Origin: Macrostomum lignano
Lineage: Eukaryota
NCBI GenBank assembly: GCA_002269645.1
Contig: NIVC01001486.1
Location: 186,001 to 250,000 of the forward strand
Reading direction: 5' to 3'
Length of the DNA stretch: 64,000 nucleotides
Shown here: piece after piece, positions 406 through 62,153 of the stretch
Layout of the letters: each line of letters opens with the position of its first letter
How positions within the stretch are numbered: position 1 is the stretch's first letter
Notes under the pieces: model-generated
Databases searched by the model: none
What the model was told of the DNA's origin: nothing
The model's input: only the letters and a program-made list of their open reading frames with translations
Position numbers and translations under genes: made by a program

Positions 406-459
406 CTCTCAGTGAGGCCAACCCCCCGCGCACTGATAACGACCGGTGATTCAGCAAAT

Positions 460-2034
460 ATGGCACAGGCCCTGCAACTCGCGGCACCAGACGCCTTTGA
501 CCTCGAAGGCGATCCTCTGACAAGAGCTCAGCGATGGAAAACCTGGACGCGAAGGTTCAGCAGCTACATACGCGCAGCTGGCATCACAGATGCGACACAG
601 CAGCTGGAGCTCTTAGTTTACACTGCGGGCGAGAAGCTGGAAGACTTCATGGACGATAACGGCATCAAGAAAGGAGAGTCCGCGGAGGAGCTCATCAAAA
701 AGTTGCAGGGTATCTTCGACCAAAAGAACAGCGTTGTCTTCCTCAGGTACCAGTTTGAAATATGCCGGCAGGAGGAAGGAGAGTCAATTGAGGCCTGGTA
801 TCATCGGCTACGCAAGGCTGCGGACCAATGTACGTTCGGCGAACTCCGAGACTCGCTCATCAGGGACAAGATCGTGGCTCATTACCGGTCCGAGAGGATC
901 AGGAGGGAACTCCTGCAGCTCAACGATGTCTCCTTAGACGACGTTTTGAAGCGAATCCGAGCGAGGGAGGCAGCGGAGCAGCAGGCCCAGGCCATGGAGA
1001 TCGGCGCCGCAGCCGACACGGGCCATCCTTCCGCTTCGAATGTGGCGGCGCTGCGTCCACCTCGTAACCGACCATCCCATACAACCAGGCCGGCTGCCGC
1101 GGCAAGAGACAGCGGCATCAACTGCGATCGCTGCGGGCGACCAGGGCATCAGACGTGCGAGGCAGCCCGTAACAAGGCGTGTCGACGCTGCGGCAAGATG
1201 GGTCATTTCGCTCGGGCGTGTCGAGGAGCAGCTAAAGTCCCTCTGAGGACCGTTGACGAACCGCAGGAGGAGGCTCCGCCGGGTCGAGTCGAATATCTGC
1301 AAGACGACCCCATCGAGCACGAGCTATTCACCCTGAGGAACTACGGCTCTACTTGGACGCCTGCGACAATTAACGGGCTCAAGACAAAGGTGCTCATCGA
1401 CAGCGGCGCGGCCTGCAACATCATCGACAGGGCGGCCTACGACAGGATGCCGCAAAAAGCCGCGCTGCAGCCCGCAAGCGACAAGGTCTACCCATACGGA
1501 AGCCAAGAGCCGCTGAGATTGCTGGGCAAGGCAGACCTGCAAGTCAGCGCGTTCGAGATCCACGAGACACTACCGTTCTTGGTGCTCGACGGTGAGGGCG
1601 CTTGCATCATTGGCCGGAGAAGCGCTGAAAGACTTCAGATTCTGCGAGTCGGCCCGGAGAACAAGGTGGCATGCCAGCTGCGTCCGTCTCCCGAGGTCTC
1701 GCTAGACAGCATGCTAACAGGGATCCCAAAGGACGTCCTACATGCGCCGGGGGCACCGGCCCTGCACAAACTCCTAACGGAGAACGCACAGGTCTTCAGC
1801 GGAATCGGCAGGCTCAAAAACTATGCCGCCCGCATCTTCCTGGAGGAGGGAGCCAGGCCGATCTGTCATTCCCCATCAAGGGTGCCAATACATCTCGCAC
1901 AGGCAGTCGACGCCGAGCTGCAGTGCCTCGAGGACCAAGGCATCATCGAGCCGGTGGAAGGCCCCTGTCCGTGGGTAGCCCGCATCGTCGTCGTGCCCAA
2001 GCAGACTCCAGGCGAGATCAGGATTACGCAGGAC
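460..2034 (+). CDS. Gypsy gag-protease and start of RT (in frame up to the frameshift)
   Basis: ORF 412..2481; first ATG at 460. Gag, CCHC knuckles, DSG protease and the RT start PWVARIVVVPK...IRITQD. Past 2034 this frame loses RT similarity. Confidence 0.85.
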
Positions 2035-2035
2035 T

Positions 2036-4486
2036 TTGAGAGACCTGAACAAGTCGGTCATCAGAGAGCGGCATCCCATCCCGACATTCGAGGAGGTGAC
2101 GGGAGACATGGCAGGAGCGCAGCTATTCTCAGAGCTCGACATCGCGAAGGCATTTTATCAAATCCCAGTCGCCGACGAATGCCGCCATCTTCTGACTTTT
2201 TCGACACCACGAGGCCTGCGGCGGCTGACACGGCTCTGTATGGGACTGTCTACGGCCCAGGAAATTCTCCAGGCGGTCATGTCATCCGTGCTAGCTGGAC
2301 TCCCGAAAGTAAAATGGATTCACGACGACATCATCGTGTATGGGCACAGCGTGGCGGAGCACCACAGCAACCTGCAGGCATGTCTGCGACGACTGGCGCA
2401 GCACGGGCTGACGCTGAATCCGTTAAAATGCAAGCTCGCCCGTACCGAGGTCACGTTCATGGGGATGCAGCTGTCCAGTGAAGGTGTCAGACCAACCCAG
2501 TCCAAGTTGGAAGCCATCCATGCATTTGCCGAGCCAAAGACCGCCACAGAGGTGCGCTCGTTCCTAGGCCTGGTCAACTATCTGGCCTCATTCACCCCCG
2601 GGCTGGCGGATGTAGCGAGGCCACTGCGCAATCTGACTAGGAAAGGCGAGCCCTGGGCATGGACCGACCTCGAGAAACGAGCTTCTGACGACGTGAAGAC
2701 CCGGATTGCGACCAGCGGCACCCTCGCCTTCTTCAACCACCGCCTAGCGACGCAACTCATCGTCGACGCCGGCCCAGCGGGCCTGGGCGCGATCCTAACG
2801 CAGACGCAAGCGGACGGCACCAACCGGCCTGTCGCGTACGCCAGCCGGACGCTGTCCGATGTTGAGCAGCGCTACTCCCAGACTGAGAAGGAGGCGCTGG
2901 CCGTCAAATACGGCTGCTTGAAATTTCAGTACTATCTGCACGGCGCTCCGACATTTACGGTGGTGACAGACCACAAGCCGCTCATCGCATTGTTCAGCAG
3001 TGGCTCAAGGCCTCCCCCGAGGATCGAAAGAATGGCGCTGCGCATTCAGCACATTAAATTTACAGTCGAATACCAGCCTGGCCCACTAAACCCAGCGGAC
3101 GTGCTGAGCCGGCAGCCGCTGCCAACACGAGAAAGAAATGTCGGCGAAGAGCTCGACACCCTCTGCATCGCTGCAATCGTCCAGGCGGCCATACCGAACG
3201 CGCTGTCGCTGTCCTCAGTGCAAGAGAGTTCGCTGCAAGATGCAACAATTCAAGCCGCTATTCGATCGCTGGAGACAGGACGATGGAGCCTCGAGTCGGC
3301 GGAGACGCGATCGCTCCACGCCCTACGGAATGAGCTATCGGCAGCAGACGGCGTGCTCCTGCGGGGCCAGAGAATCGTAGTTCCAATGGCGCTTCGGCGC
3401 CTGGTTTTGGACCTGGCACACCGCGGTCATCAGTGCCTGCGCAAGACGGTTTACCGTTTGAGCACCAAAGTCTGGTGGCCGAGGATGCAGACAGAAGCAG
3501 AGCTCTTCGTGCGTGCCTGCCGAGCCTGTGCAGCTACGTCGCACGCGGCCGACGTGACCGCCGCGCCGCTGAAGCCGACGCCGATCCCGAAAGCTGCATG
3601 TCTAACACTAGGGGCAGACCTGCTAGGCCCCATTCAAGGCAGCATGCTGCTCGTCTGCGTTGACCACTACTCGCGCTTCCCTGAAGTCGAGATCGTCCAG
3701 ACCACAACGGCCGAAGCGCTGATTCCCAAGCTGAGGAATTCGTTCGCCAGATTCGGCATCCCGCAGGTACTGGTCACCGATAACGGCCCGCCATTCTCCT
3801 CGGCCCAGTTCAAAGGCTTTCTGGACAGCTACGGAATCCGGCAGCGTCTCATCACACCGCTGCATCCGCAGGCCAACGGCATCACTGAGCGCCTGAACCG
3901 CTCCATCAATAAGGTTGAACCAGCTGCCATTGCCCAGAAGCGCGACTGGAGGGCGGCCCTTGACGAGTGGCTGCTGGCCTACCGTTGCACGCCGCAGCGA
4001 ACCACCAAACGGGCACCAGCCGAGCTGCTCTTGGGTCGCGTCCCAAACGACGCCATCCCGTCAATCAGGCCGTCGAGACCGGTGGCCATCGCAGACAGGA
4101 GGCTCCGACAGCAGGACGCCAGCAGCAAGGCAAAGGGCAAGCGCTACACGGACAAGCGACGGCAGGCGAGACCGCATGGGCTCAAAGTCGGCGACACGGT
4201 GCTCCGGCGCCGACTAAATCCGCTCAAGGGCGAGACTCCGTTCGAGTGGACACCCTGGCTGGTCGAGAGTGTCAAGGGCGACTCGATGACCATTCGGCAG
4301 GGCGCCAGAGTTTGCAGGCGGCACTGCACTGACCTGAAGCGGGTAGCGCCAGATGCAGAGCCCGATTTTCCTGTCGGGGAGACCGCACCGCCGATCCTGC
4401 AAGCTGCGGGGAGCGAACCCGCGACCCCTCCAATTGCGCTGCGACCAGCGAACACTCTGACTGCGTCCTGGCTCCAACTGAGGTAG
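2036..4486 (+). CDS. Gypsy pol continuation (RT, RNase H, integrase), joined to the upstream frame by a 1-nt frameshift
   Basis: The ORF begins LRDLNK, which continues the RT motif D-x-R-x-L-N-K from GAC at 2032-2034. There is one extra T in TTT 2035-2037. Confidence 0.9.
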   Translation: MRDLNKSVIRERHPIPTFEEVTGDMAGAQLFSELDIAKAFYQIPVADECRHLLTFSTPRGLRRLTRLCMGLSTAQEILQAVMSSVLAGLPKVKWIHDDIIVYGHSVAEHHSNLQACLRRLAQHGLTLNPLKCKLARTEVTFMGMQLSSEGVRPTQSKLEAIHAFAEPKTATEVRSFLGLVNYLASFTPGLADVARPLRNLTRKGEPWAWTDLEKRASDDVKTRIATSGTLAFFNHRLATQLIVDAGPAGLGAILTQTQADGTNRPVAYASRTLSDVEQRYSQTEKEALAVKYGCLKFQYYLHGAPTFTVVTDHKPLIALFSSGSRPPPRIERMALRIQHIKFTVEYQPGPLNPADVLSRQPLPTRERNVGEELDTLCIAAIVQAAIPNALSLSSVQESSLQDATIQAAIRSLETGRWSLESAETRSLHALRNELSAADGVLLRGQRIVVPMALRRLVLDLAHRGHQCLRKTVYRLSTKVWWPRMQTEAELFVRACRACAATSHAADVTAAPLKPTPIPKAACLTLGADLLGPIQGSMLLVCVDHYSRFPEVEIVQTTTAEALIPKLRNSFARFGIPQVLVTDNGPPFSSAQFKGFLDSYGIRQRLITPLHPQANGITERLNRSINKVEPAAIAQKRDWRAALDEWLLAYRCTPQRTTKRAPAELLLGRVPNDAIPSIRPSRPVAIADRRLRQQDASSKAKGKRYTDKRRQARPHGLKVGDTVLRRRLNPLKGETPFEWTPWLVESVKGDSMTIRQGARVCRRHCTDLKRVAPDAEPDFPVGETAPPILQAAGSEPATPPIALRPANTLTASWLQLR

Positions 4487-10574: not shown

Positions 10575-11825
10575 GAAGAGAGAGTCGAGGAGAAAAAAAA
10601 GAAAGAAGAGTTAAGTGGGAAGAGAGGAGAGAGGAGAAATAAAAAGGAGAGAGGAGAGACAAGAGAGAAGAGATGAGAAAGAAAAGAGAAGAAAGGAGGG
10701 CAGAGAGAAGAGAGAATAGAGGAGGGAGGAAAGGCAAATAGAGAAGAGAGAAGAGAGATGAGCCGGATGAGAATGAAAAAAGGAAAGAGGGAGGAGAGGA
10801 GAGAGGGACGAGGGGAGAGAGGGAGGAGAGGAGAGAGGGAGGAGAGGAGAGAGGGAGGAGAGGAGAGAGGGAGGAGAGGAGAGAGGGACGAGGGGAGAGA
10901 GGGAGGAGAGGAGAGAGGGACGAGGGAAGAGAGGGAGGAGAGGAGAGAGGAACGAGGGGAGAGAGGGAGGAAAGGAGAGAGGGAGGAGAGGAGAGAGGGA
11001 GGAGAGGAGAGAGGAACGAGGGGAGAGAGGGAGGAAAGGAGAGAGGGAGGAGAGGAGAGAGGGAGGAGAGGAGAGAGGGAGGAGAGGAGAGAGGGAGGAG
11101 AGGAGAGAAGGAGGAGAGGAGAGAGGGAGGAGAGGAGAGAGGGACGAGGGGAGGGAGGGAGGGAGGAGAGGAGAGAGGAACGAGGGAAGAGAGGGAGGAG
11201 AGGAGAGAGGAACGAGGGGAGAGAGGGAGGAAAGGAGAGAGGGAGGAGAGGAGAGAGGGAGGAGAGGAGAGAGGGAGGAGAGGAGAGAGGGAGGAGAGGA
11301 GAGAGGGAGGAGAGGAGAGAGGGAGGAGAGGAGAGAGGGAGGAGATGAGAGAGGGAGGAGAGGAGAGAGGGAGGAGAGGAGAGAGGAACGAGGGGAGAGA
11401 GGGAGGAAAGGAGAGAGGGAGGAGAGGAGAGAGGAACGAGGGGAGAGAGGAAGGAAAGGAGAGAGGGAGGAAAGGAGAGAGGGAGGAGAGGAGAGAGGAA
11501 CGAGGGGAGAGAGGAACGAGGGGAGAGAGGAAGGAAAGGAGAGAGGGAGGAAAGGAGAGAGGGAGGAAAGGAGAGAGGGAGGAAAGGAGAGAGGGAGGAG
11601 AGGAGAGAGGGAGGAGAGGAGAGAGGGAGGAGAGGAGAGAGGAGGAGAGGAGAGAGAGAGGAGAGAGAGAGAGGAGAGAGGAGAGAGGAGAGAGGAGAGA
11701 GGAGAGAGGAGAGAGGAGAGAGGAGAGAGGAAAGTGGAAAGTGGAGAGAGGAGAGAGGAGAGAGGAGAGAGGAGAGAGGAGAGAGGAGAGAGGAGAGAGG
11801 AGAGAGGAGAGAGGAGAGAGGAGAG
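10575..11825. repeat. 1.25-kb purine-rich satellite (GAGGAGAGGAGAGAGG-type units)
   Basis: Nearly pure G/A on the + strand; the long ORFs here are repeat artefacts. Confidence 0.95.
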
Positions 11826-12292
11826 AAGTTTCAAAGAACCGAGGGCCTGCAGATAGAGACACAGTCAATCCCAGCAGAAATTTGAAATCCGCCCAGGGAA
11901 AAGCCATGATTTTACGAGCGTACATTTTTGACCCACAAACATGATCATCTTTATTTTGGATTATTTATATCGCTGCGCGTTCGATTAGTTTTCTAAAAAT
12001 ACATTTAAACCCGGAATAGCTACAGTTGCAGCGATGAATTCTGTTATTGAATGTTGACGACCAGAATAAAGACGTCTGTTCAAAGAAGAAAATAATTAAT
12101 AACACTAATTTTTAAGACACTGAAAAAAGCATAAAGGAAAGCATCTAGTTGAAGTGTTTACTATCTGTCTAAGTCTTTGAAAATAATGTGTACAATCAAT
12201 ATTTATCGGACAAATTAGAATTAACTCCTGTTGGAGGTTTTCAGTATCTATCTGAACATGAACATGCAATTGTAAGTAAATTCATGTCTGTA

Positions 12293-19300: not shown

Positions 19301-22300
19301 ACTTGGGTAAATTGATTCGCTGGAAGTAGTTGAGGTAGTCTTTAATGAGTAGCTTTATCGGATCAGGTCATTTGCCCTTCGCAACTATTGATAGAAAAAA
19401 GCGACCCTAACCGCCGTGGTGAGTTTAGCGGCCATCTCATCGTAGTTCTCATTCTGCATTATGATTGACTTCTCCCGGCTCAGAGCGCCCTCAAATCCGG
19501 CCGCGACCTCTGGCCCGTAGGTACCCTGCGTGGCATGGAAAGTGTTGATGCAGTCTTCCACATTGTAGTTGCTGGCCCGTAAGCTGGCGAGCAGGTCGCA
19601 TTCATCGCGCCATTGCGGGCACAGCTCCTGCGGTAGGAGTTCGATTAGGGTTTGATTAGGGTTCGAATAGGTTTCGATTAGGTTTTGATGAGGGTTCGAT
19701 TAGGGTTCGAAAAGGCTTCGATTAGGTTTTGATTAGGGTTCGATTAGGGTACGATTAGGGTACGATTCGGGTTCGATTAGATCTCGATTAGGGTTCAATT
19801 AGGTTTCGATTAGGTTTCGATTAGGGTTCGATTAGGGTTCGATTAGGATTCGATTTAGGTTCGATTAAGGTACGATTAGGGTTCGATTAGGGTCCGATTA
19901 GAGTTAGATTAGGTTTAGAATAGGGTTCGATTATGTTTTGATTAGCCTTTGATTAGGGTTAGATTAGGTTTCGAATAGGGTTCGATAATGTTTTGATTAG
20001 GTTCGATCAGAGTACGATTAGGGTTCAATTAGGGTTCAATTAGTGTTCAATTAGGGTGCAATTAGGGTTCAATTAGGGTACGATTGGGGTTCGGTTAAGG
20101 TACGATTAGGTTTCGATTACGGTACGATTATGATTCGATTAGGGTTCGATTAGGGTACGATTATGGTTCAATTAGGGTCCGATTAGGGTACGATTAGGTT
20201 TCGGTTAGTTTTCGATTCGGGTTCGATTAGGGCTCGATTAGGTTCGATTAGGGTTCGATTAGGGTTCGATTCGGGTTCGATTAGAGTTTGATTTCAAAAT
20301 TCAGTGAGGATCATAATTTTTTAGACTGACTGAAGGATGTGATTGAGATGGAAGAATGTAAGGAGTAAGTACATGTATGGCTTATTAAAAATATTTTTTA
20401 CCTGAGTCTGTCTGACCAGCTTCTTAGCGACATCAGTTTTTAGCTCCCATTTGAGCGGCAGTTTGATCCAGGCCGATTCATCCGGGTCATAGTAGCAGTG
20501 GACGTTGCGCCTGTGCTGTAAAAATGAAGTCAGGGAAGTTTAGGAATTTCTGGGATGTCTGAGATTTCTGGGATGTCAGGGATGTCAGGGATGTCAGGGA
20601 TGTCAGGGAAGTCAGGGATGCCAGTGATTTCAAGAGTTTCAGAGATGTTAGAGATCTCAGGGAAGTCAAGGAAGTCAGTTATTTCAGGGATGTTAGGGAT
20701 GTCATACCGTAGATGCAAATTGTTATTCGAATTTGAGATCAATCGCCAATAAACGATGATGGTACCGGTGGAGTAGACTATCATTGGTAAGGTATTTCAT
20801 CGGTTTCAGATCACATCTCAGAGGACCAAGAGTTACGGTAAGATATGTACAATTCCGAATGCCACAAATTGTACTGTACGAGTACGATGGTGCAGAGAAT
20901 TCATTCTCAGTGGATTTTAAGTAAAATATTGACTCACTATTGAGATCACGCGATAAGACTATGCTCAAAACGATTCACAGTGAAAGTCGTCCAACTCCCC
21001 CCTTAGCTCTCTCTCTATACTCCAAGCTGAGCAAGTTGAAGTGACTTCTTCTTATTCTCTAAAGAACAGCTGGGCAGTGGAGAGGGGAGTTTTATGCTGT
21101 TTTATGGCCTGGCTGGAGGTTCACCCTAGCGATATGTTGACAGACTCTTAATTTGGGATCGGCAGAATTTAATCAATCGATACGCGCTTCCCTTTTCTAG
21201 CTTTCTCGGACATGGACAACTCACTGTGGAACTCTGGGGAAACAGAGATCTGAGTAAGGATCAAATAATATTTTAAATATGAGCTCAATCTTTAGTTTAA
21301 TTGTGCTGAAAAGTAAATTTCCTAGGACTGTAAAATTAGTTAGACTGGTATTTGACTTTTGATAGAAATTTTTCATCGCTTGCATGCTTCAGCTAATTAC
21401 GAGTACGAAGTATAACAAAATCTTTCTTTCTGATATCTTAGACCATCTGACAAATGGTTAGTTTATTCAGCTTTGACCTGAGTTTTAGCTGATATCTCTA
21501 TAAATGTACGTCCCAAAGTTGTAAACAAAAGCCTCCCATTCCAGATGTTCTCTGAAGGACTCCCTGGCTTCCTTGACCAACTCTTCCTCCTATAGGGGGA
21601 GCGGAGCAAACTTGCACCCCTGCAGACGAATCATGTGCATGCAGCAGCGCCCGCTTTTAGCGTTGAGACGCCCACAAGCAGTCGGAATGAGATCGAGAAC
21701 ATTTTGATCGGCAGAGGCCACCGAAGACAGTCTCGAGTGCCATAAAACAGCGAGATATCCAAGCTGACTTACATGTAGCTGCTACCCAGTAGAGCAACAG
21801 CAATAATTTGAGTCATGGCTGGCGCAGCCCAGACACTGCAGGCTGCTCTTGAGCAGTTTGTGCGACCTCATATGGTTCACGCGAGCTTCCCTGTGGACCG
21901 GTTCTTTAACAAGATGGCTTTTATGACGACAATTTTGCAGGCTGTTGCCATCATTGTTGCCAACTTCGCTGCCAGTAAGTTTTCATCAAGAATGTTTAGT
22001 GAACAGACAAATAGAGTGAACTTATCACACTCGACACTTCATCTGCTCAAAGTTTCGCATTGGTTCAAAAGCCAAGTTTTGCGATGTGAACAGTTAAGCT
22101 TGTTAAAGGGCCTGTCAACTTAAGCTCATAAAGTGGAGCCCAAGTAACCAATGTACATAAATGATGGATCATTCTGCTCAGTGACACCAGGAAGCTGGAT
22201 TTGGCAAAAAAGCGACAAAAGATAGAATGAGAATGAAAAGAGAATTCAAGAGGATAATTAGGGACTCCAACAGCTTAAGTTGATATAATATTCCCAATTA

Positions 22301-25300
22301 TCCCGTCAATAGACTCTCGGAAACGTCAGCTGACGTCGGATTGCTGTAGGGGCTGCTCTTTAACCTGTACTGGACTCCAGGTTGCTGCGGGTGTTTCGAA
22401 TAGAAAAATATGGCTTTACTAAGCAAGGCACCAAAATTTCCCGTTGACAGAAGCCAAGATCAGCTGCACACCGGAGGGCGGAGGCGGCGGGTCGAGCAAC
22501 TCCTCTAGCGGCTCGGGCCCAGACATCAGGCACAAGGCTTACGCAGAGAGCTACTGCTACTCGCAGGGCGTGGACCAGAGGCTAACGCCCAACCACACCA
22601 TACCAGCTGACCTGCAAGGCGTCCTAAACCACTACCTGCTGCAGTTCTACTTTCCGCTGCTGTTCCTGCTGCAGGCTGTGTCCCTGTACATGCCCTACTA
22701 CACCTGGAGCAAAACTGTCGGTGAGCAGCTTAGAGAGCAGCTCCAATTCGTGGTGGATTTGTCGCTTAAGCTGTTGGAAGATAAAGAGGAGCAAGCCGAA
22801 GGCCACGTGCACTCAGAGTCCTGCAAGAGCCGCCGGATGCAGCAGGGCCGGCCGTCCAAGTCGGACGTGCTCACGGACAGCGCACTCAAACAACGGCTTA
22901 AACGGTGGTACTGCAAGGGCAAGCACACCAGAAACTATTACCTGTTCCAGATAGCCAGGGTGACTCTGTTGCTGTTCTGGATCAGTTTCTACGTCTTCTG
23001 TCCGGGCTTCCGGCACCGGGACATTCGCTACGAGTTCATGTGCGTCATACGGAATCGGGACGATTACCGGTTCATGTGCGTGCTGCTGCAGGCCAGCATC
23101 TTCGAGCTCGGCTGGACGGGGAACCTCTGCATCTTGGTCTTCTGTCTGCTGCTCGTTTCGCACCAAATCTTCTACGTGTTCCCATTTGTCTTCAGCTGCA
23201 GGTGCACCTGCTGCAAGACTAAACGCTGCCTGCCATCGTGCAGGAAAGAGTGCCGGTCGCACTACTTTCAGCGAATTCTTGGCCTCGTTGTCCAACCGAA
23301 GCGGGAGCCGGTGGGCTCGGTCTGCTGCACTATCTGCATCGGTGGCAACGGTGGCACCACCTACGAGCAGCTGAACGGAGGTACGGACTACTACTCGCCC
23401 AGGCTGGTGGATCGGTACTACATATCGCGGCTTTGCTACGAGAATTCGCACCTGCTCGACAAGGTACTGCCGGATATGGGCAGCGCCAATGCGCCAGACG
23501 AGTTCAGCAGCATGGGCAACATAGCCTCCATCGCCATGAAGCTGGACAGTAAAGCCGACGAAGCAACTGACAGCGTCGATCAGGGTCTTCAAGAGGCCGG
23601 AGGGCAGGTTAAGAAATCTTTCAATCCGTTCTTGAGCAAACTAAAGCAAGCAAAATCTACGGCTGAGTCGAGTCTGAGTGAGGCCAAGTCGGCAGCTGAG
23701 TCAGGCCTGGGTGAAGCCAAGTCGGCAGCTGAGTCAGGCCTGGGTGAAGCCAAGTCGGCAGCTGAGTCAGGCCTGGGTGAAGCCAAGTCGGCAGCTGAGT
23801 CAGGCCTGAGTGAGGTTAAGTCGGCAGCTGAGTCAGGCCTGAGTGAGGCCAAGTCGGCAGCTGAGTCGGGCCTGGGTGAAGCCAAGTCGGCAGCTGAGTC
23901 AGGCCTGGGTGAAGCCAAGTCGGCAGCTGAGTCAGGCCTGAGTGAGGCCAAGTCGGCAGCTGAGTCAGGCCTGAGTGAGGCCAAGTCGGCAGCTGAGTCA
24001 GGCTTGAGTGAAGCTAAATCGGCAGCTGATGAAAAATAGAAAACCGGTTATATTCCTATCGGTGTGAGTTTGCTGAGCTCAAAAGAAGTGCTTGAGCACT
24101 AAAACTAGAAGCTAGAGCAAAAAACTGATGAAAACTGCATGCAGCAATATTTATTCATTGTATTTAAGTTTTAATTTTGTCATTTTTTCATGAATTCTGT
24201 TTTGAATTTGTTCCGCACTCTTTACGTACGAGTACTCGTATGTGCGCTCGTTCTTGGCACTTAACGGTGTTGGAAACATAATAATAAACAATTCCCAAAA
24301 CATTGTACATTCAGTCCAACTTGGTTGATCCAGGATTTAGATTTGGGTTTGTTATTGGACATAAACTCGATCAGCTGATTGTAAGGTTCAGGAAGCAAGA
24401 ATATGGCTACAAGAAGTTACGGATACTGAGCGGTAGATCAGTGGAAATGAATGTATGTTGGCGGTTTCAAAGCTTTTGTGAGGGAAGGGGGAACTCTTAA
24501 GTCCCTACCTAAGGTTGATGACTCAAACAACAGGGATTTTCTACGCCATTCTTCTTGTACAATACGTGAGTGTATTGTAAATTACTTTCGAATTTAAAGT
24601 CAATGAGACCTGTAAATTACTGATAGGTTAAACTAATGTTGTCATTCTTTACTTCATCCTTATATAATAGTGAATGATGGAATATCTGTTGCCATGGGAT
24701 TCAAAATCATCAAAAGTTATAAGAAGTTACGGGAAATTATAATTACCTATGGATACGGATTTTGGTTGCACCAATAGATCCTATATTCCCTAGATAGGCC
24801 ACTTTGTATTTCGGCTATAGGGAAAGCGCGACCGCTATTTTTCGTATATATGATACTTGGTTGCACCTCAAAAAACATTTCTCACCTCAAAGATGTAGGT
24901 CTGGAAGACTCCCTTCCCTGGAATCTTGATCACACCCTCGCGCTCGTCCTTCTTGCCTTCGCTGATCTCCACATTGACGGCCTGCGCGTTGGATCCGCTG
25001 GGTGCCTCCCCGCCCTGGCCAGCGCTTGCCTGCGAGTGAGTGCAGAAAAGTCCAATATAAAGCCGACTACTCAATTCATTGTACACAGGCAGATGCACTG
25101 AGATGCCCGCGACTCACCTCACTGCCTCCAAGTACGTCATCGACTTCGAGCGCGCCTTCGGAATACCACTCCAAAGGAAACTCCAGCCACTCCTGTGCGA
25201 GATGAATAAAAAAATGCGGCGTGTGGCTTACAAGGCTTTGATGACTCTACGTAAGACACGTCGTACTGAGTACACGCGCTCACACAGGGTGTAAGAGTCC

Positions 25301-33365: not shown

Positions 33366-33862
33366 ATGTTTTTGAATACCCTGACGCCCAAATTTTATGT
33401 GGCGTTGACGGGCACCTCTTCTCTTATCTCTGGCCTAATTTTGGTAAGCTGTCATTAGTTTCAATACAATGGGGATTAAACATTCAAATAGATTTGATAT
33501 TAATTCCCATAACTCAGAATTGGGTATCAGATATCCCAGGACTCGACCCAGATGGGAATCTATCTGGATTAAGAATCAGATATCCCAGGAATAAGTTTTT
33601 GCACTATTGATGCAAGTTAAACATTAGAAAAACCGCCAACACAATTGACAGATCTTCGAATGGTGGTACTTCAAAAAGTACGGCACGTCCTTCATTGAGC
33701 AGATCTCGCTGACTCATATCAGCCCGCTGCTGGGTGGAGCAGACGATGATGAGTCCATTGAGTATGGAGAGTCTGGCAACAACAACCAGAATAGCATTCA
33801 GGGTGAGTGTGGAATCCGCCTATCTATCTGTCTGTCTATCTATCTGTCTATCTGTCTATCTG

Positions 33863-33921
<59 letters not shown>

Positions 33922-33966
33922 GTCTTTCTATCTATCTATCTATCTATTTATTTATCTATATATCTG

Positions 33967-34013
<47 letters not shown>

Positions 34014-34088
34014 GCCTATCTATCTGTCTGTCTATCTATCTATCTATCTGTCTGTCTATCTATCTATCTGTCTTTCTATCTATCTATC

Positions 34089-34119
<31 letters not shown>

Positions 34120-34123
34120 CTAC

Positions 34124-34185
<62 letters not shown>

Positions 34186-34242
34186 GTCTGTCTATCTATC
34201 TATCTGTCTTTCTATCTGTCTGTCTATCTATCTGTCTATCTG

Positions 34243-34289
<47 letters not shown>

Positions 34290-34454
34290 GCCTATCTATC
34301 TGTCTGTCTATCTATCTATCTATCTATCTGCCTATCTATCTGTCTGTCTATCTATCTGTCTGTCTATCTATCTGTCTATCTGTCTATCTATCTATCTATC
34401 TATCTATCTGCCTATCTATCTGTCTGTCTATCTATCTGTCTGTCTATCTATCTG

Positions 34455-34505
<51 letters not shown>

Positions 34506-34510
34506 GTCTT

Positions 34511-34583
<73 letters not shown>

Positions 34584-37539
34584 TTAACTATCTATCTATC
34601 TATCTACCTATCTACCCGCAGCCCCACCCCAATCCGCAGAGTGCAAGGTATGGCGCAATCCCTACAGTTTATTCCGTGGTGCCGAATACCAGCGCTACAA
34701 AGAGGTGACCAACCTGGAGCCTCTCACCTATTACGATATGAATCTGTCGGCACAGGATCATCAAACATTCTTCATCTGCGAGGCAGACAATGGCAAGCCG
34801 GAGTATGAAAGTGAGTTACACTTTTGATTGATATTTATGGCCAATATATATCCTTGAGCGTCCATCTCAACACCTTGCAACTGCACTCCACACGACTGAC
34901 TCCCTTGACCCACTTCCGGGTGTCCCTTGACCCACTTCCGGCTCTCCCTTAACCCACTTCTGACTCTCCCTTGACCCACTTCCGACTCTCCCTTGACCCA
35001 CTTCCGGCTCTCCCTTAACCCACTTCCGAAGCTCCCTTGACCCAATTCCGACTCTCACTTGACCCACTTTCGACTCACTTGACCCACTTCCGACTCTCCC
35101 TTGACCCACTTCCGACTTTCACTTGACCCACTTCCAACTCTCCCTTGACCCACTTCCGACTCTCACTTGACCCACTTTCGACTCACTTGACCCACTTCCG
35201 ACTCTCCCTTGACCCACTTCCGACTCTTCCTTGACCCACTTCCAACTCTCCCTTGACCCACTTCCGACTTTCACTTGACCCACTTTCGACTCACTTGACC
35301 CACTTCCGGCTCTTCCTTGACCCACACCTGACTCTCTTGACCCACTTCCGAAGCTCCCTTGACCCACTTCCGACTCTTCCTTGACCCACTTCCGGCTCTT
35401 CCTTGACCCACACCCGACTCTCTTGACCCACTTCCGAAGCTCCCTTGACCCCAAGCTCCCGAACTCGCCCCCGCAGTCATGCAGCTGGCCTGGCGGGAGC
35501 GCAGTCCATCTGAGCGAATCAAAAAGGCCAAGGAGGCCCTGGAGAAGAACCCCGACTGCGCACCGGCCATGATACTCCTAGCTGAGGAGGAGTGCTCCAC
35601 CGTGCTCGAGGTTGAGAAGCTGTTGCGGCAGGCCTACAAATCAGCTGAGGCCTCGTTCCGGAGGTCGCAGCAGCAGCAGCACCACAGCGGCAACCACGAG
35701 TCCCTGCACAGACGCGACACCAACGTGTTTATCTACGTGCGCAGGCGCTTAGCCATGTGCGCTAGGAAGCTGGGCCGACTCAAGGAGGCAATCAAAATGA
35801 TGAAGGATCTTATCAAAGAGTATCCCAGCCTCAATTTGTTTAATATACACGAGAATCTTATTGAGTGCTATTTTGAAACTGAGCAGTACGCTGATGCTCA
35901 GGCATTTCTGGCGAAGTATGATGGTGAGTCCTGCTCATGTTCTTAATGTTAAACTGTGTCTATTTTATTCTTTTGGAATTATTCTCTTTCTGAATTTATC
36001 GGGTATAATTCCCCATCATTATAAATCATTCTGGTATAATTCCCCATTATTCTAAATCATTCGGGTATAATTCCCCATCATTCTAAATCTTTCGGGTATA
36101 ATTCCCCTTCATTCTAAATCTTTCGGGTATAATTCCCCATCATTCTAAATCTTTCGGGTATAATTCCCCATCGTTCTAAATCTTTCGGGTATAATTCCCC
36201 ATCGTTCTAAATCATTCGGGTATAATTCCCCATCGTTTTAAATCATTCGGGTATAATTCCCCATCGTTCTAAATCTTTCGGGTATAATTCCCCATCGTTT
36301 TAAATCTTTCGGGTATAATTCCCCATCGTTCTGAATCATAATTCCCCCATTCTAAATCTTCCAGGTATAATTATCCTATTCTAAATCCCTCAGGTATAGC
36401 TACCCCATTCTAAATCCCTCAGATATAGTTCCCCCATTCTAAATCCCTTAGGTATAATCCCCCCATTCTAAATCCTCCAAGTATAATTCCCCCATTCTAA
36501 TTCTGTCTGTTATAGTTGCCCATCATTCTAAATCTTTCGGGTATAATTCCCCATCGTTCTGAATCATAATTCCCCCATTCTAAATCTTCCAGGTATAATT
36601 ATCCTATTCTAAATCCCTCAGGTATAATTCCCCCATTCTAAATCCTCAGGTATAGCTACCCCATTCTAAATCCCTTAGGTATAATCCCCCCATTCTAAAT
36701 CCTCCAAGTATAATTCCCCCATTCTAATTTTGTCTGTTTTAATTGCCCATCATTCTAAATCATTGAGGTATAATTCCCCATCGTTCTAAATCATTCGGGT
36801 ATAATTCCCCATCGTTCTAAATCATAATTCCCCCATTCTAATTCTGTCGGGTAAAATTTCCCCGTTCTAATTCTGTCGGGTAAAATTTCCCCGTTCTAAT
36901 TCTGTCGGGTATAATTCCCCATCATAAATCCTCTAGGAATAATTTTCCCATTCTAAATCCCTGAGGTATTATTCTTTCAGTCTAAAATCCCTTCTTTAGT
37001 ATTATTATCTCTATTCTAAAACTGTTCAAAAGGGATTATCCTGATTTCTCAATACTAACTCAATGAATGCAAGGTATTTGGCTTGCCCTCTGAATGCATG
37101 CAGTTTACACGCCTAGCTAAGCGCATGGCAACCCGGCCCCATTGCAGACATCACATATCCCAAATCGGCAACCATTTGCTACACGGCGGCTCTACTCAAG
37201 GCTAGATTTGTGGCAGACAAGTGAGTGGCCTGAGTTTTTCTCTCTGTAGTAACTCTGCTCTGTGTCTGCTCTATGCACGATTCCCTTTGTTATATTGTGC
37301 ACGGTATTGAGGCTTGGCCGTCCATCAGTCGCTTTGAAATAATTAAAATGATTGTTTTTGTGTGGATGGATAAGTTTGAAAATTAAATATTATCGTGTAA
37401 TCTGTTTTGAGGCGGGTTCCAGCAGTCTGTTGATCAGTTAATCATATTATATGACTTGTGTGGCTGTTGGACAGACAGACAGCCAGCCAGACAAACAACA
37501 GACAGACAGACAGACAGACAGACAGATAGGCAGACACTA

Positions 37540-47253: not shown

Positions 47254-62153
<14,900 letters not shown>

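Follow-up and report, generated by a model that had tools for sequence, protein, structure and literature searches.

Does a channel of the pannexin type exist outside chordates? This question is raised by a gene of the flatworm Macrostomum lignano, carried on the forward strand of a 64,000-nucleotide stretch of contig NIVC01001486.1 (positions 186,001 to 250,000; this whole stretch is hereafter called the window, and positions are numbered from its first letter). According to the standard view, innexins are found in invertebrates, whereas pannexins are the retained chordate homologues that have turned into glycosylated single-membrane channels, the two groups being a single family split by speciation (PMC8769644, PMC3928549, PMC6391747). 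A preliminary description of the window, made from the letters alone, had nevertheless read the gene as encoding an invertebrate channel that tracks PANX1-type motifs and lacks those of innexins. The analysis presented here leads to a somewhat different reading, to which we would give a probability of roughly 0.6: the gene comprises two exons and encodes a subunit of a large-pore channel that belongs to an unnamed clade located, within the superfamily, on the side of the chordate pannexins, without being an orthologue of PANX1, PANX2 or PANX3.

The two exons are separated by a single intron (Table 1). The ATG at 21815 is directly preceded by an in-frame stop codon, exon 1 is identical to the UniRef model P0001, and exon 2 is an uninterrupted open reading frame (ORF) ending with a TAG stop codon at 24037-24039. 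An AATAAA hexamer at 24283..24288 (+), 244 nt past the stop codon, is a candidate polyadenylation signal by consensus match. The spliced product has 582 amino acids (aa) and its reading frame is intact. The supposition that the genome was that of a flatworm is correct, since 319 aa of the protein match, with 100% identity, the UniRef entry A0A1I8G5P7 from M. lignano, a truncated 319-aa model that was automatically named 'Innexin'. The same species also encodes a paralogue (A0A1I8J165 / PAA56329.1, hereafter P0019) that is 55-57% identical and in which the transmembrane, extracellular-loop and C-terminal blocks are conserved.

Translation of positions 21000-24500 placed the gene, its motifs and its two glycosylation sequons where the preliminary description had located them. 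Thus, MAGAAQ begins at aa 1, PVDRF at aa 26, KISCTP at aa 56, AYAESYCYS at aa 83, a further ten-residue motif at aa 118, SLYMP at aa 131, LQFVVD at aa 151, EFMCVI at aa 248, FMCVL at aa 261, IFEL at aa 270 and RLCYEN at aa 380, and both YYQW and NEK are missing from the spliced protein, as had been stated. The end of the coding region, which had been set at 23460, had to be moved: reading continues in the same frame as far as 24039, and the paralogue P0019 is conserved past the equivalent point. Both an end of the coding sequence and a splice donor at 23460 were rejected, as the read-through is conserved in the PAA56329.1 model of the paralogue. Since the frame remains open past this position, the full product also includes a cysteine-rich juxtamembrane stretch and a tail made of 11-aa repeats.

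It is highly improbable that this gene is an artefact, i.e. a pseudogene, or the product of mis-assembly, contamination or horizontal transfer from an organism other than a flatworm. Such an origin might be suspected because the window is extremely repeat-rich, because the tail is encoded by a young tandem array whose copies are 93% identical at the DNA level, and because the other relatives are known only from amphioxus and from metagenome eukaryotes. However, the frame of 582 codons is intact and the splicing sites are canonical (GT-AG), the paralogue retains the conserved blocks, and the Macrostomum models come from two sources, namely UniRef/WormBase-type entries and NCBI BOX15_Mlig entries. 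Furthermore, the nearest relative outside flatworms is only about 24% identical, which argues against any recent contamination.

The protein displays the architecture of the innexin/pannexin superfamily, a placement that is already in the databases through automatic naming. Hydropathy delimits four hydrophobic segments, corresponding to four transmembrane segments (TM1 to TM4), and each of the two extracellular loops (EL1 and EL2) includes two cysteines (C59/C89 and C251/C263) that are invariant in the clade described below and align with the cysteines of pannexins. As in chordate pannexins, which have the same four-TM fold and the same two cysteines per loop, TM2 starts with (F/L)P instead of YYQWVP, EL2 is short (about 26 aa, a pannexin length), (E/D)(E)F.C precedes the third cysteine, C.L....(I/V)F.L....N(L/I) leads into TM4, and a cytoplasmic helix with the pattern D..(L/I)....C.EN, near the 'FCNEN' of PANX2, is found after TM4. 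This helix (aa 374-389) corresponds to DINILALFCNENRDH in PANX2 and to NDLSLYLLFLEENISE in PANX1, and a further conserved block lies between it and the repeat tail.

The likeness to innexins (Aplysia Q29ZM7, Hydra A0A0H5FNA2, Caenorhabditis elegans INX-6) consists of the superfamily and topology, an alignable TM1-EL1-TM2 region, the conserved second cysteine and the P...QA...Y.P...W pattern of TM2. In contrast with innexins, the window protein carries LLQFYFP where YYQW(V/I)P would be expected, and its EL2, devoid of the P-x-N-x-x-NEK motif, is roughly half as long as that of innexins (~55 aa). The protein also differs from chordate pannexins: it is only about 12-19% identical to them, it keeps the innexin-like 'QA' pair in TM2, it does not conserve W74, which forms the pore ring of PANX1, and it adds the cysteine-rich juxtamembrane stretch and the tail of 11-mer repeats; a caspase-site tail is not evident, although no dedicated search for it was made.

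AlphaFold monomer models, built for P0019 and for the first 319 residues of the window protein (UniRef model P0001), show four long helices and beta-hairpins in the extracellular loops, matching the fold of the superfamily (mean predicted local distance difference test score, pLDDT, 60-61). When these models were compared with the PDB using Foldseek, all of the top 50 matches were PANX1/2/3 or LRRC8 structures (TM-score about 0.5, prob 1.00), and INX-6 was not among these 50.

Table 1. Features of the channel gene and of its product in the window, and exons of two related genes found on metagenome-derived contigs (coordinates of the last two rows are those of the loci L001 and L004).
Feature	Position	Strand	Residues	Remarks
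Exon 1	21815..21974	+	aa 1-53 and first base of codon 54	Start codon, N-terminal helix, TM1
TM1	21902..21973	+	aa ~30-53	Hydropathy; AlphaFold helix 19-52
Intron	21975..22450	+		476 bp, phase 1, immediately after TM1; GT..AG, donor GTAAGT at 21975
Exon 2	22451..24039	+		EL1, TM2, cytoplasmic loop, TM3, EL2, TM4, C-terminal domain, repeat tail
EL1 Cys1	22465..22467	+	C59, in KISCTP	Invariant in the clade; aligns with the cysteine of pannexin ISCF(S/P)P
EL1 sequon N-S-S	22498..22506	+	N70	N-glycosylation sequon conserved throughout the clade, kept in the paralogue
EL1 Cys2	22555..22557	+	C89, in ESYCYS	Invariant column in the clade
EL1 second sequon N-H-T	22591..22599	+	N101	Not kept in the paralogue
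TM2	22636..22707	+	aa ~116-139	Takes the place of the innexin YYQWVP motif
TM3	22939..23013	+	aa ~217-241	Hydropathy; AlphaFold helix
EL2	23014..23091	+	aa ~242-267	Short beta-hairpin with C251 and C263 (EFMCVI...FMCVL)
TM4	23092..23190	+	aa ~268-300	Hydropathy; AlphaFold
Cysteine-rich juxtamembrane stretch	23191..23262	+	aa 301-324	Right after TM4
Post-TM4 cytoplasmic helix	23410..23457	+	aa 374-389	D374 and N385 invariant in the clade
In-frame tandem repeat	23662..24029	+		C-terminal tail; 33 bp x 11.2; 11-aa unit AAESGL[S/G]EAKS; found with TRF
P0004 gene, exons	L001 5831-6007, 9965-11065			Phase-1 GT..AG intron; donor just past an AAA Lys codon
P0017 gene, exons	L004 732-894, ~2390-3217			Phase-1 GT..AG intron

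Sequence comparisons show that the resemblance to pannexins exceeds chance. Among all PDB chain sequences, the only significant matches of the window protein are pannexin-1 entries (E 1e-5), and PANX1 is also the only significant match of a profile built from the two flatworm paralogues (E 3e-7); INX-6, LRRC8 and CALHM gave no match to either query even at E<=10. A profile of six clade members reaches PANX2 with E 8e-19 (71 bits, nearly full length), PANX1 with 6e-18 and PANX3 with 4e-10, PANX2 and PANX1 being the closest solved structures, as against 3.7e-4 (22.7 bits) for INX-6 and 0.04 for LRRC8A. In profile-profile alignments made with hhalign, the clade matches pannexins at 99.4% (E 2.7e-21, 297 columns, score 163), tunicate homologues at 98.4% (E 8.6e-15, 293 columns, score 116) and innexins at 93.6% (E 2e-7, 104 columns, score 63). 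For the flatworm pair taken on its own, the corresponding values are 95.9% over 309 columns with pannexins and 94.5% over 119 columns with innexins.

The Pfam family PF00876 (Innexin, gathering score 25 bits) has no match to the window protein at E<=10. The paralogue scores 18.3 bits on it and the full-length protein P0004, a clade member, 30.3 bits, the matches of the clade lying between 18 and 30 bits, on the N-terminal half only. As reference points, a Hydra innexin reaches 90.6 bits, its match covering the full model, whereas a lancelet pannexin, ray PANX1 and PANX2 and a tunicate homologue obtain 35-46 bits, with matches confined to the N-terminal half. True pannexins thus obtain such low scores that this model must be considered weak for the pannexin side of the family, and at sequence level the clade behaves toward it as pannexins do. 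Direct comparison with hidden Markov models (HMMs) of the pannexin and innexin families gives scores of 63/9, 48/7, 35/11 and 32/18 bits (pannexin/innexin) for the four clade members that do not come from flatworms. Globally, sequence and fold are closer to pannexins than to innexins, strongly so for the clade and marginally for the flatworm protein alone.

The clade itself was delineated with the profile of the two flatworm paralogues, which HMMER compared exhaustively (E<=1e-3) with 1.84 billion representative proteins, flatworm proteomes included. Only six matches were obtained: the query, a nematode innexin and the proteins P0004, P0005, P0006 and P0007. The nematode match is a mis-assembled innexin that aligns only over EL1/TM2, in four repeated copies, whereas the best full-length matches are the amphioxus and metagenome proteins (35-52 bits). 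The flatworm profile gives 30-50 bits with the other clade members versus at most 19 bits with any pannexin or innexin, and the hhalign comparison of the flatworm pair with the rest of the clade reaches 99.1% (E 6.9e-19, 200 columns). A word-indexed search, with either the window protein or a six-sequence alignment, returned only two Macrostomum clusters, probably because low-complexity words filled the stage of 8000 candidates.

P0005/P0011 is the Branchiostoma floridae protein XP_035661843.1 ('uncharacterized protein LOC118406090'), and P0004, P0006/P0015 and P0007/P0017 were found only on metagenome-derived eukaryotic contigs from ENA or Logan, one of the contigs carrying such a relative being 546 kb long, with ankyrin and SH2 genes nearby. 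Judged from their sequences, these proteins form a small, divergent and unnamed clade, whose known members are the two paralogues of M. lignano, the amphioxus protein and the three metagenome-derived clusters. The amphioxus protein, P0004, P0015 and P0017 are 20-25% identical to the window protein, are shorter (about 340-420 aa) and carry neither the cysteine-rich segment nor the repeat tail. Depending on the members aligned, 14-19 columns are invariant, including both pairs of extracellular cysteines, P122, Q128, A129, P135 and W139 in TM2, W275 and N278, to which D374 and N385 must be added in the members where the C-terminal region is present.

Gene structure provides an additional link between these proteins. 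The window, P0004 (L001) and P0017 (L004) genes have in common a phase-1 intron located right after TM1, 5-8 codons before the first cysteine; the P0015 gene is devoid of it. P0004 and P0017 had first been called as ORFs limited to exon 2, their exons 1, which encode the N-terminus and TM1, lying further upstream by ~4 kb (P0004) and ~1.5 kb (P0017).

The canonical lancelet pannexin (sequence from the supplement of PMC8769644) is a separate protein that matches solved PANX3/PANX1 with E 1e-53. Since it is distinct from XP_035661843.1, amphioxus possesses a protein of each kind: a true pannexin and a member of the clade of the flatworm protein. The largest survey of innexin/pannexin glycosylation sites does not include Macrostomum and attributes only one homologue to the lancelet (PMC8769644), and our literature search found no paper describing the clade or XP_035661843.1. 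In supplementary file 8 of that survey (source data 3 for Figure 2), the first entries labelled as tunicate, Tu_Cin_01/02 and Tu_Cro_01/02, are identical to lancelet sequences; its labels are apparently shifted, and its species labels were therefore not relied on.

Further evidence comes from EL1. The two sequons that had been reported in this loop lie between TM1 and TM2 (NSS at 22498, N70; NHT at 22591, N101), and the first of them belongs to a site found throughout the clade. Each of the six members carries exactly one sequon, located 6-10 residues past the first cysteine, between the two EL1 cysteines, and in a joint alignment this sequon coincides with the NFT site of PANX2 and the NFS site of a lamprey (PANX3-type) pannexin. 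Shuffling of the segment gives a chance of 0.11-0.28 per protein of finding a sequon, i.e. a product of 4.6e-5. As the sequon is kept while the neighbouring residues are poorly conserved, selection seems to act on it.

Several points weigh against the reading that we propose. First, the AlphaFold models have only a modest confidence. Second, the window protein taken alone scores 23.4 bits on the pannexin HMM, 20.4 bits on the innexin HMM and 30.9 bits on the HMM of tunicate homologues, the corresponding values for the paralogue being 17.6, 13.2 and 17.7 bits; with phmmer, the best innexin even exceeds the best pannexin for the paralogue (16.7 versus 10.1 bits). These near-tied direct scores indicate that the flatworm proteins owe their affinity for pannexins largely to a transitive link, passing through the clade members that are clearly pannexin-like. 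The affinity that had been claimed for the flatworm protein is thus upheld by the PDB, hhalign and Foldseek comparisons but remains marginal when this protein is considered alone. Third, the trees combine distance methods with saturated data and with clade members that are all long branches, the clade groups with pannexins in only 51-76% of bootstraps and with tunicate homologues in 15-39% of them, and the innexin sample comprises one lophotrochozoan subfamily (mollusc, annelid and brachiopod sequences drawn from a search seeded with an Aplysia innexin) and one Hydra sequence, without flatworm, ecdysozoan or ctenophore innexins. Lastly, sequons are common in the extracellular loops of non-chordate innexins, and seven sequon-bearing innexins still form gap junctions (PMC8769644), so that a sequon alone is no proof of a single-membrane channel.

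The first rival explanation is that of a fast-evolving innexin specific to flatworms, which would have lost YYQWVP and NEK, would resemble pannexins through convergence and long-branch attraction and would function as an ordinary innexin. The nearly tied HMM scores, the sub-threshold match of the paralogue to the Pfam Innexin model, the retention of the innexin-like 'QA' pair and 'Y.P...W' in TM2 and a tree devoid of flatworm innexins count in favour of this explanation. However, no flatworm innexin was retrieved at E<=1e-3 in the scan of 1.84 billion proteins, whereas the flatworm pair aligns with the amphioxus and metagenome proteins at 99.1%, and the flatworm gene has both the phase-1 intron and the EL1 sequon in common with clade members. 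Full-length lophotrochozoan innexins present on ENA contigs were called as single ORFs, and therefore appear to be devoid of this intron. Furthermore, the flatworm proteins group with innexins in 0-2% of bootstraps, including on the well-aligned TM1-EL1-TM2 block (8% on the TM3-EL2-TM4 block alone). A divergent innexin is thus quite unlikely, and the preliminary statement that sets the protein apart from ordinary innexins holds, on account of the missing hallmark motifs, the absence of any PF00876 match to the window protein and these bootstrap values.

The trees mentioned above are unrooted neighbour-joining trees computed from scoredist or Kimura distances, with 200-300 bootstraps and three MAFFT strategies, on the whole core or on blocks. 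They separate innexins from everything else (97-100%) and recover the clade as monophyletic (77-97%; 42% on the TM3-EL2-TM4 block alone), the tunicate homologues as a clade of their own (94-100%) and the pannexins as monophyletic to the exclusion of the clade (97-100%; 62% on the TM3-EL2-TM4 block alone). The idea of a PANX1-type protein, which the earlier motif comparison carried, does not survive if it is taken to mean orthology: the chordate pannexins group together without the window protein, and amphioxus has both kinds of proteins.

According to the second rival explanation, the superfamily would have the clade as a separate, third branch of ancient origin, standing as far from pannexins as from tunicate homologues or from innexins; its likeness to pannexins would reflect retained ancestral features and the choice of references. 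The absence of a root, the modest frequency of the grouping with pannexins, the fraction of bootstraps joining the clade to tunicates and the higher score of the window protein on the tunicate HMM than on the pannexin HMM would all fit such a branch. We nevertheless consider it unlikely, as the clade profile aligns over its full length with PANX2 and PANX1 at about 70 bits versus 22.7 bits with INX-6, as hhalign scores decrease from pannexins to tunicate homologues and to innexins, as the EL1 sequon occupies the same position in PANX2 and the lamprey pannexin, and as the TM1-EL1-TM2 block alone unites the clade with pannexins at 76%, against tunicates with innexins (the TM3-EL2-TM4 block alone gives 11% for clade plus pannexins). 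A position on the chordate-pannexin side, outside PANX1, PANX2 and PANX3, therefore remains the reading that we retain.

More distant families were also considered. The LRRC8 proteins, which make up VRAC, the volume-regulated anion channel, resemble the window protein by their fold (Foldseek E about 1e-6) and by a 'YFPY'-type start of TM2, but the window protein has its 11-aa repeat tail instead of a leucine-rich repeat (LRR) domain. Membership in LRRC8 was rejected on the basis of this missing domain, of the lack of any match of the window protein to PF12534 and of the E value of 0.04 obtained with the clade profile, and a kinship with connexins or CALHM was rejected because the clade profile gave only E>0.3 or nothing with them in the PDB. 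The tunicate homologues (dataset of Welzel & Schuster 2022) have in common with the window protein the N-terminal LQA.LE...H, the 'W.C' before TM3 and the 'QA' pair of TM2, but they form their own clade and have much longer cytoplasmic loops. One of these, the TM2-TM3 loop, includes '(R)HLFSMLCYENF', which closely resembles the flatworm post-TM4 helix (aa 374-389), through either internal duplication or chance. The five-mer 'LCYEN', present both in the tunicate loop and in EL1 of LRRC8A, was dismissed as a short-word coincidence, the homologous element being the post-TM4 helix.

How would such a protein work? The following proposal is inferred as regards glycosylation, operation outside junctions, permeant species, stoichiometry and the role of the tail. 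The fold consists of four TM helices, two extracellular loops closed by disulfide bonds and N- and C-termini on the cytoplasmic side, and several subunits would assemble into a ring forming a large-pore oligomeric channel. The asparagine N70 of EL1 would be N-glycosylated in the endoplasmic reticulum, and the glycan, exposed on the docking surface, would disfavour head-to-head pairing, as in PANX2 and PANX3. Glycans at the extracellular site of pannexins are reported to block docking (PMC8769644). Given these reports and the location of the sequon on the docking face, at the PANX2/PANX3 site, a single-membrane channel is the most likely mode of operation; the channel would then serve mainly for the passage of ions and of small metabolites, ATP for instance, rather than as a gap junction. 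The suggestion of the preliminary description that glycans prevent docking here is strengthened, as far as sequence conservation can tell, by the presence of the EL1 sequon throughout the clade.

The long C-terminal region, comprising the cysteine-rich segment, the conserved helix and the 11-mer tail, would likely be a regulatory or anchoring part of the channel. The cysteine-rich stretch is conserved in the Macrostomum paralogue and absent from the amphioxus and metagenome members of the clade; this segment is a possible palmitoylation or metal-binding site. A CCTIC motif is found near it, at about 23323-23337. The tandem array that encodes the tail is absent from P0019, and searches of the tail against Pfam gave only a sub-threshold ApoA1 match (E 4e-4) and borderline Mucin-like matches. 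Its 11-residue periodicity recalls the amphipathic 11/3 helices of apolipoproteins, synucleins and late embryogenesis abundant (LEA) proteins. The cysteine-rich segment and the repeat tail can be regarded as additions specific to flatworms, and one may guess that they play a regulatory or anchoring role.

The channel gene appears as an island of 54% GC amid AT-richer repeats. Long minisatellite arrays, whose units measure 4-35 bp and are repeated up to ~174 times, make up much of the window, including those at 10781-11826, 33820-34614, 47826-51205, 51809-57063 and 58841-60077, the first of which is a purine-rich 16-bp array that accounts for a spike of GC skew at 10-12 kb. Two long overlapping ORFs at 412-4486 (+), encoding zf-CCHC (gag-like) and RVT_1, RNase H and integrase (pol-like) domains, correspond to an element of the long terminal repeat (LTR) retrotransposon type. 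An ORF at 57856-58773 (+) matches Pyr_redox_2 (E 7e-21) and lies in part within a tandem array of 33-bp units (57441-58331); a flavoprotein oxidoreductase gene is the probable source of this exon or fragment.

Membership of the protein in the superfamily was already known through its automatic name, 'Innexin', and what is new is the pannexin-like clade to which it belongs. It is possible, although we hold it to be somewhat less probable than the contrary, that a distinct lineage of glycosylated single-membrane large-pore channels predates chordates and survives in Macrostomum, amphioxus and some animals represented in metagenomes. If the placement on the pannexin side is true, the pannexin-type lineage would be older than the protostome-deuterostome split, the view that pannexins are the chordate innexins would have to be revised, and a clade uniting flatworm and amphioxus proteins would imply an older duplication followed by widespread loss. 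If better phylogenies move the clade into innexins, the window gene would merely encode an unusually divergent flatworm innexin. The clade may also supply candidates in the search for large-pore or junctional proteins that have so far escaped recognition in animals devoid of innexins and connexins. Transgenesis and RNA interference work in M. lignano. If the pannexin-side placement holds, this flatworm would become a protostome model for the biology of pannexin-type channels, and the conserved glycosylation site of EL1 could be tested outside chordates.

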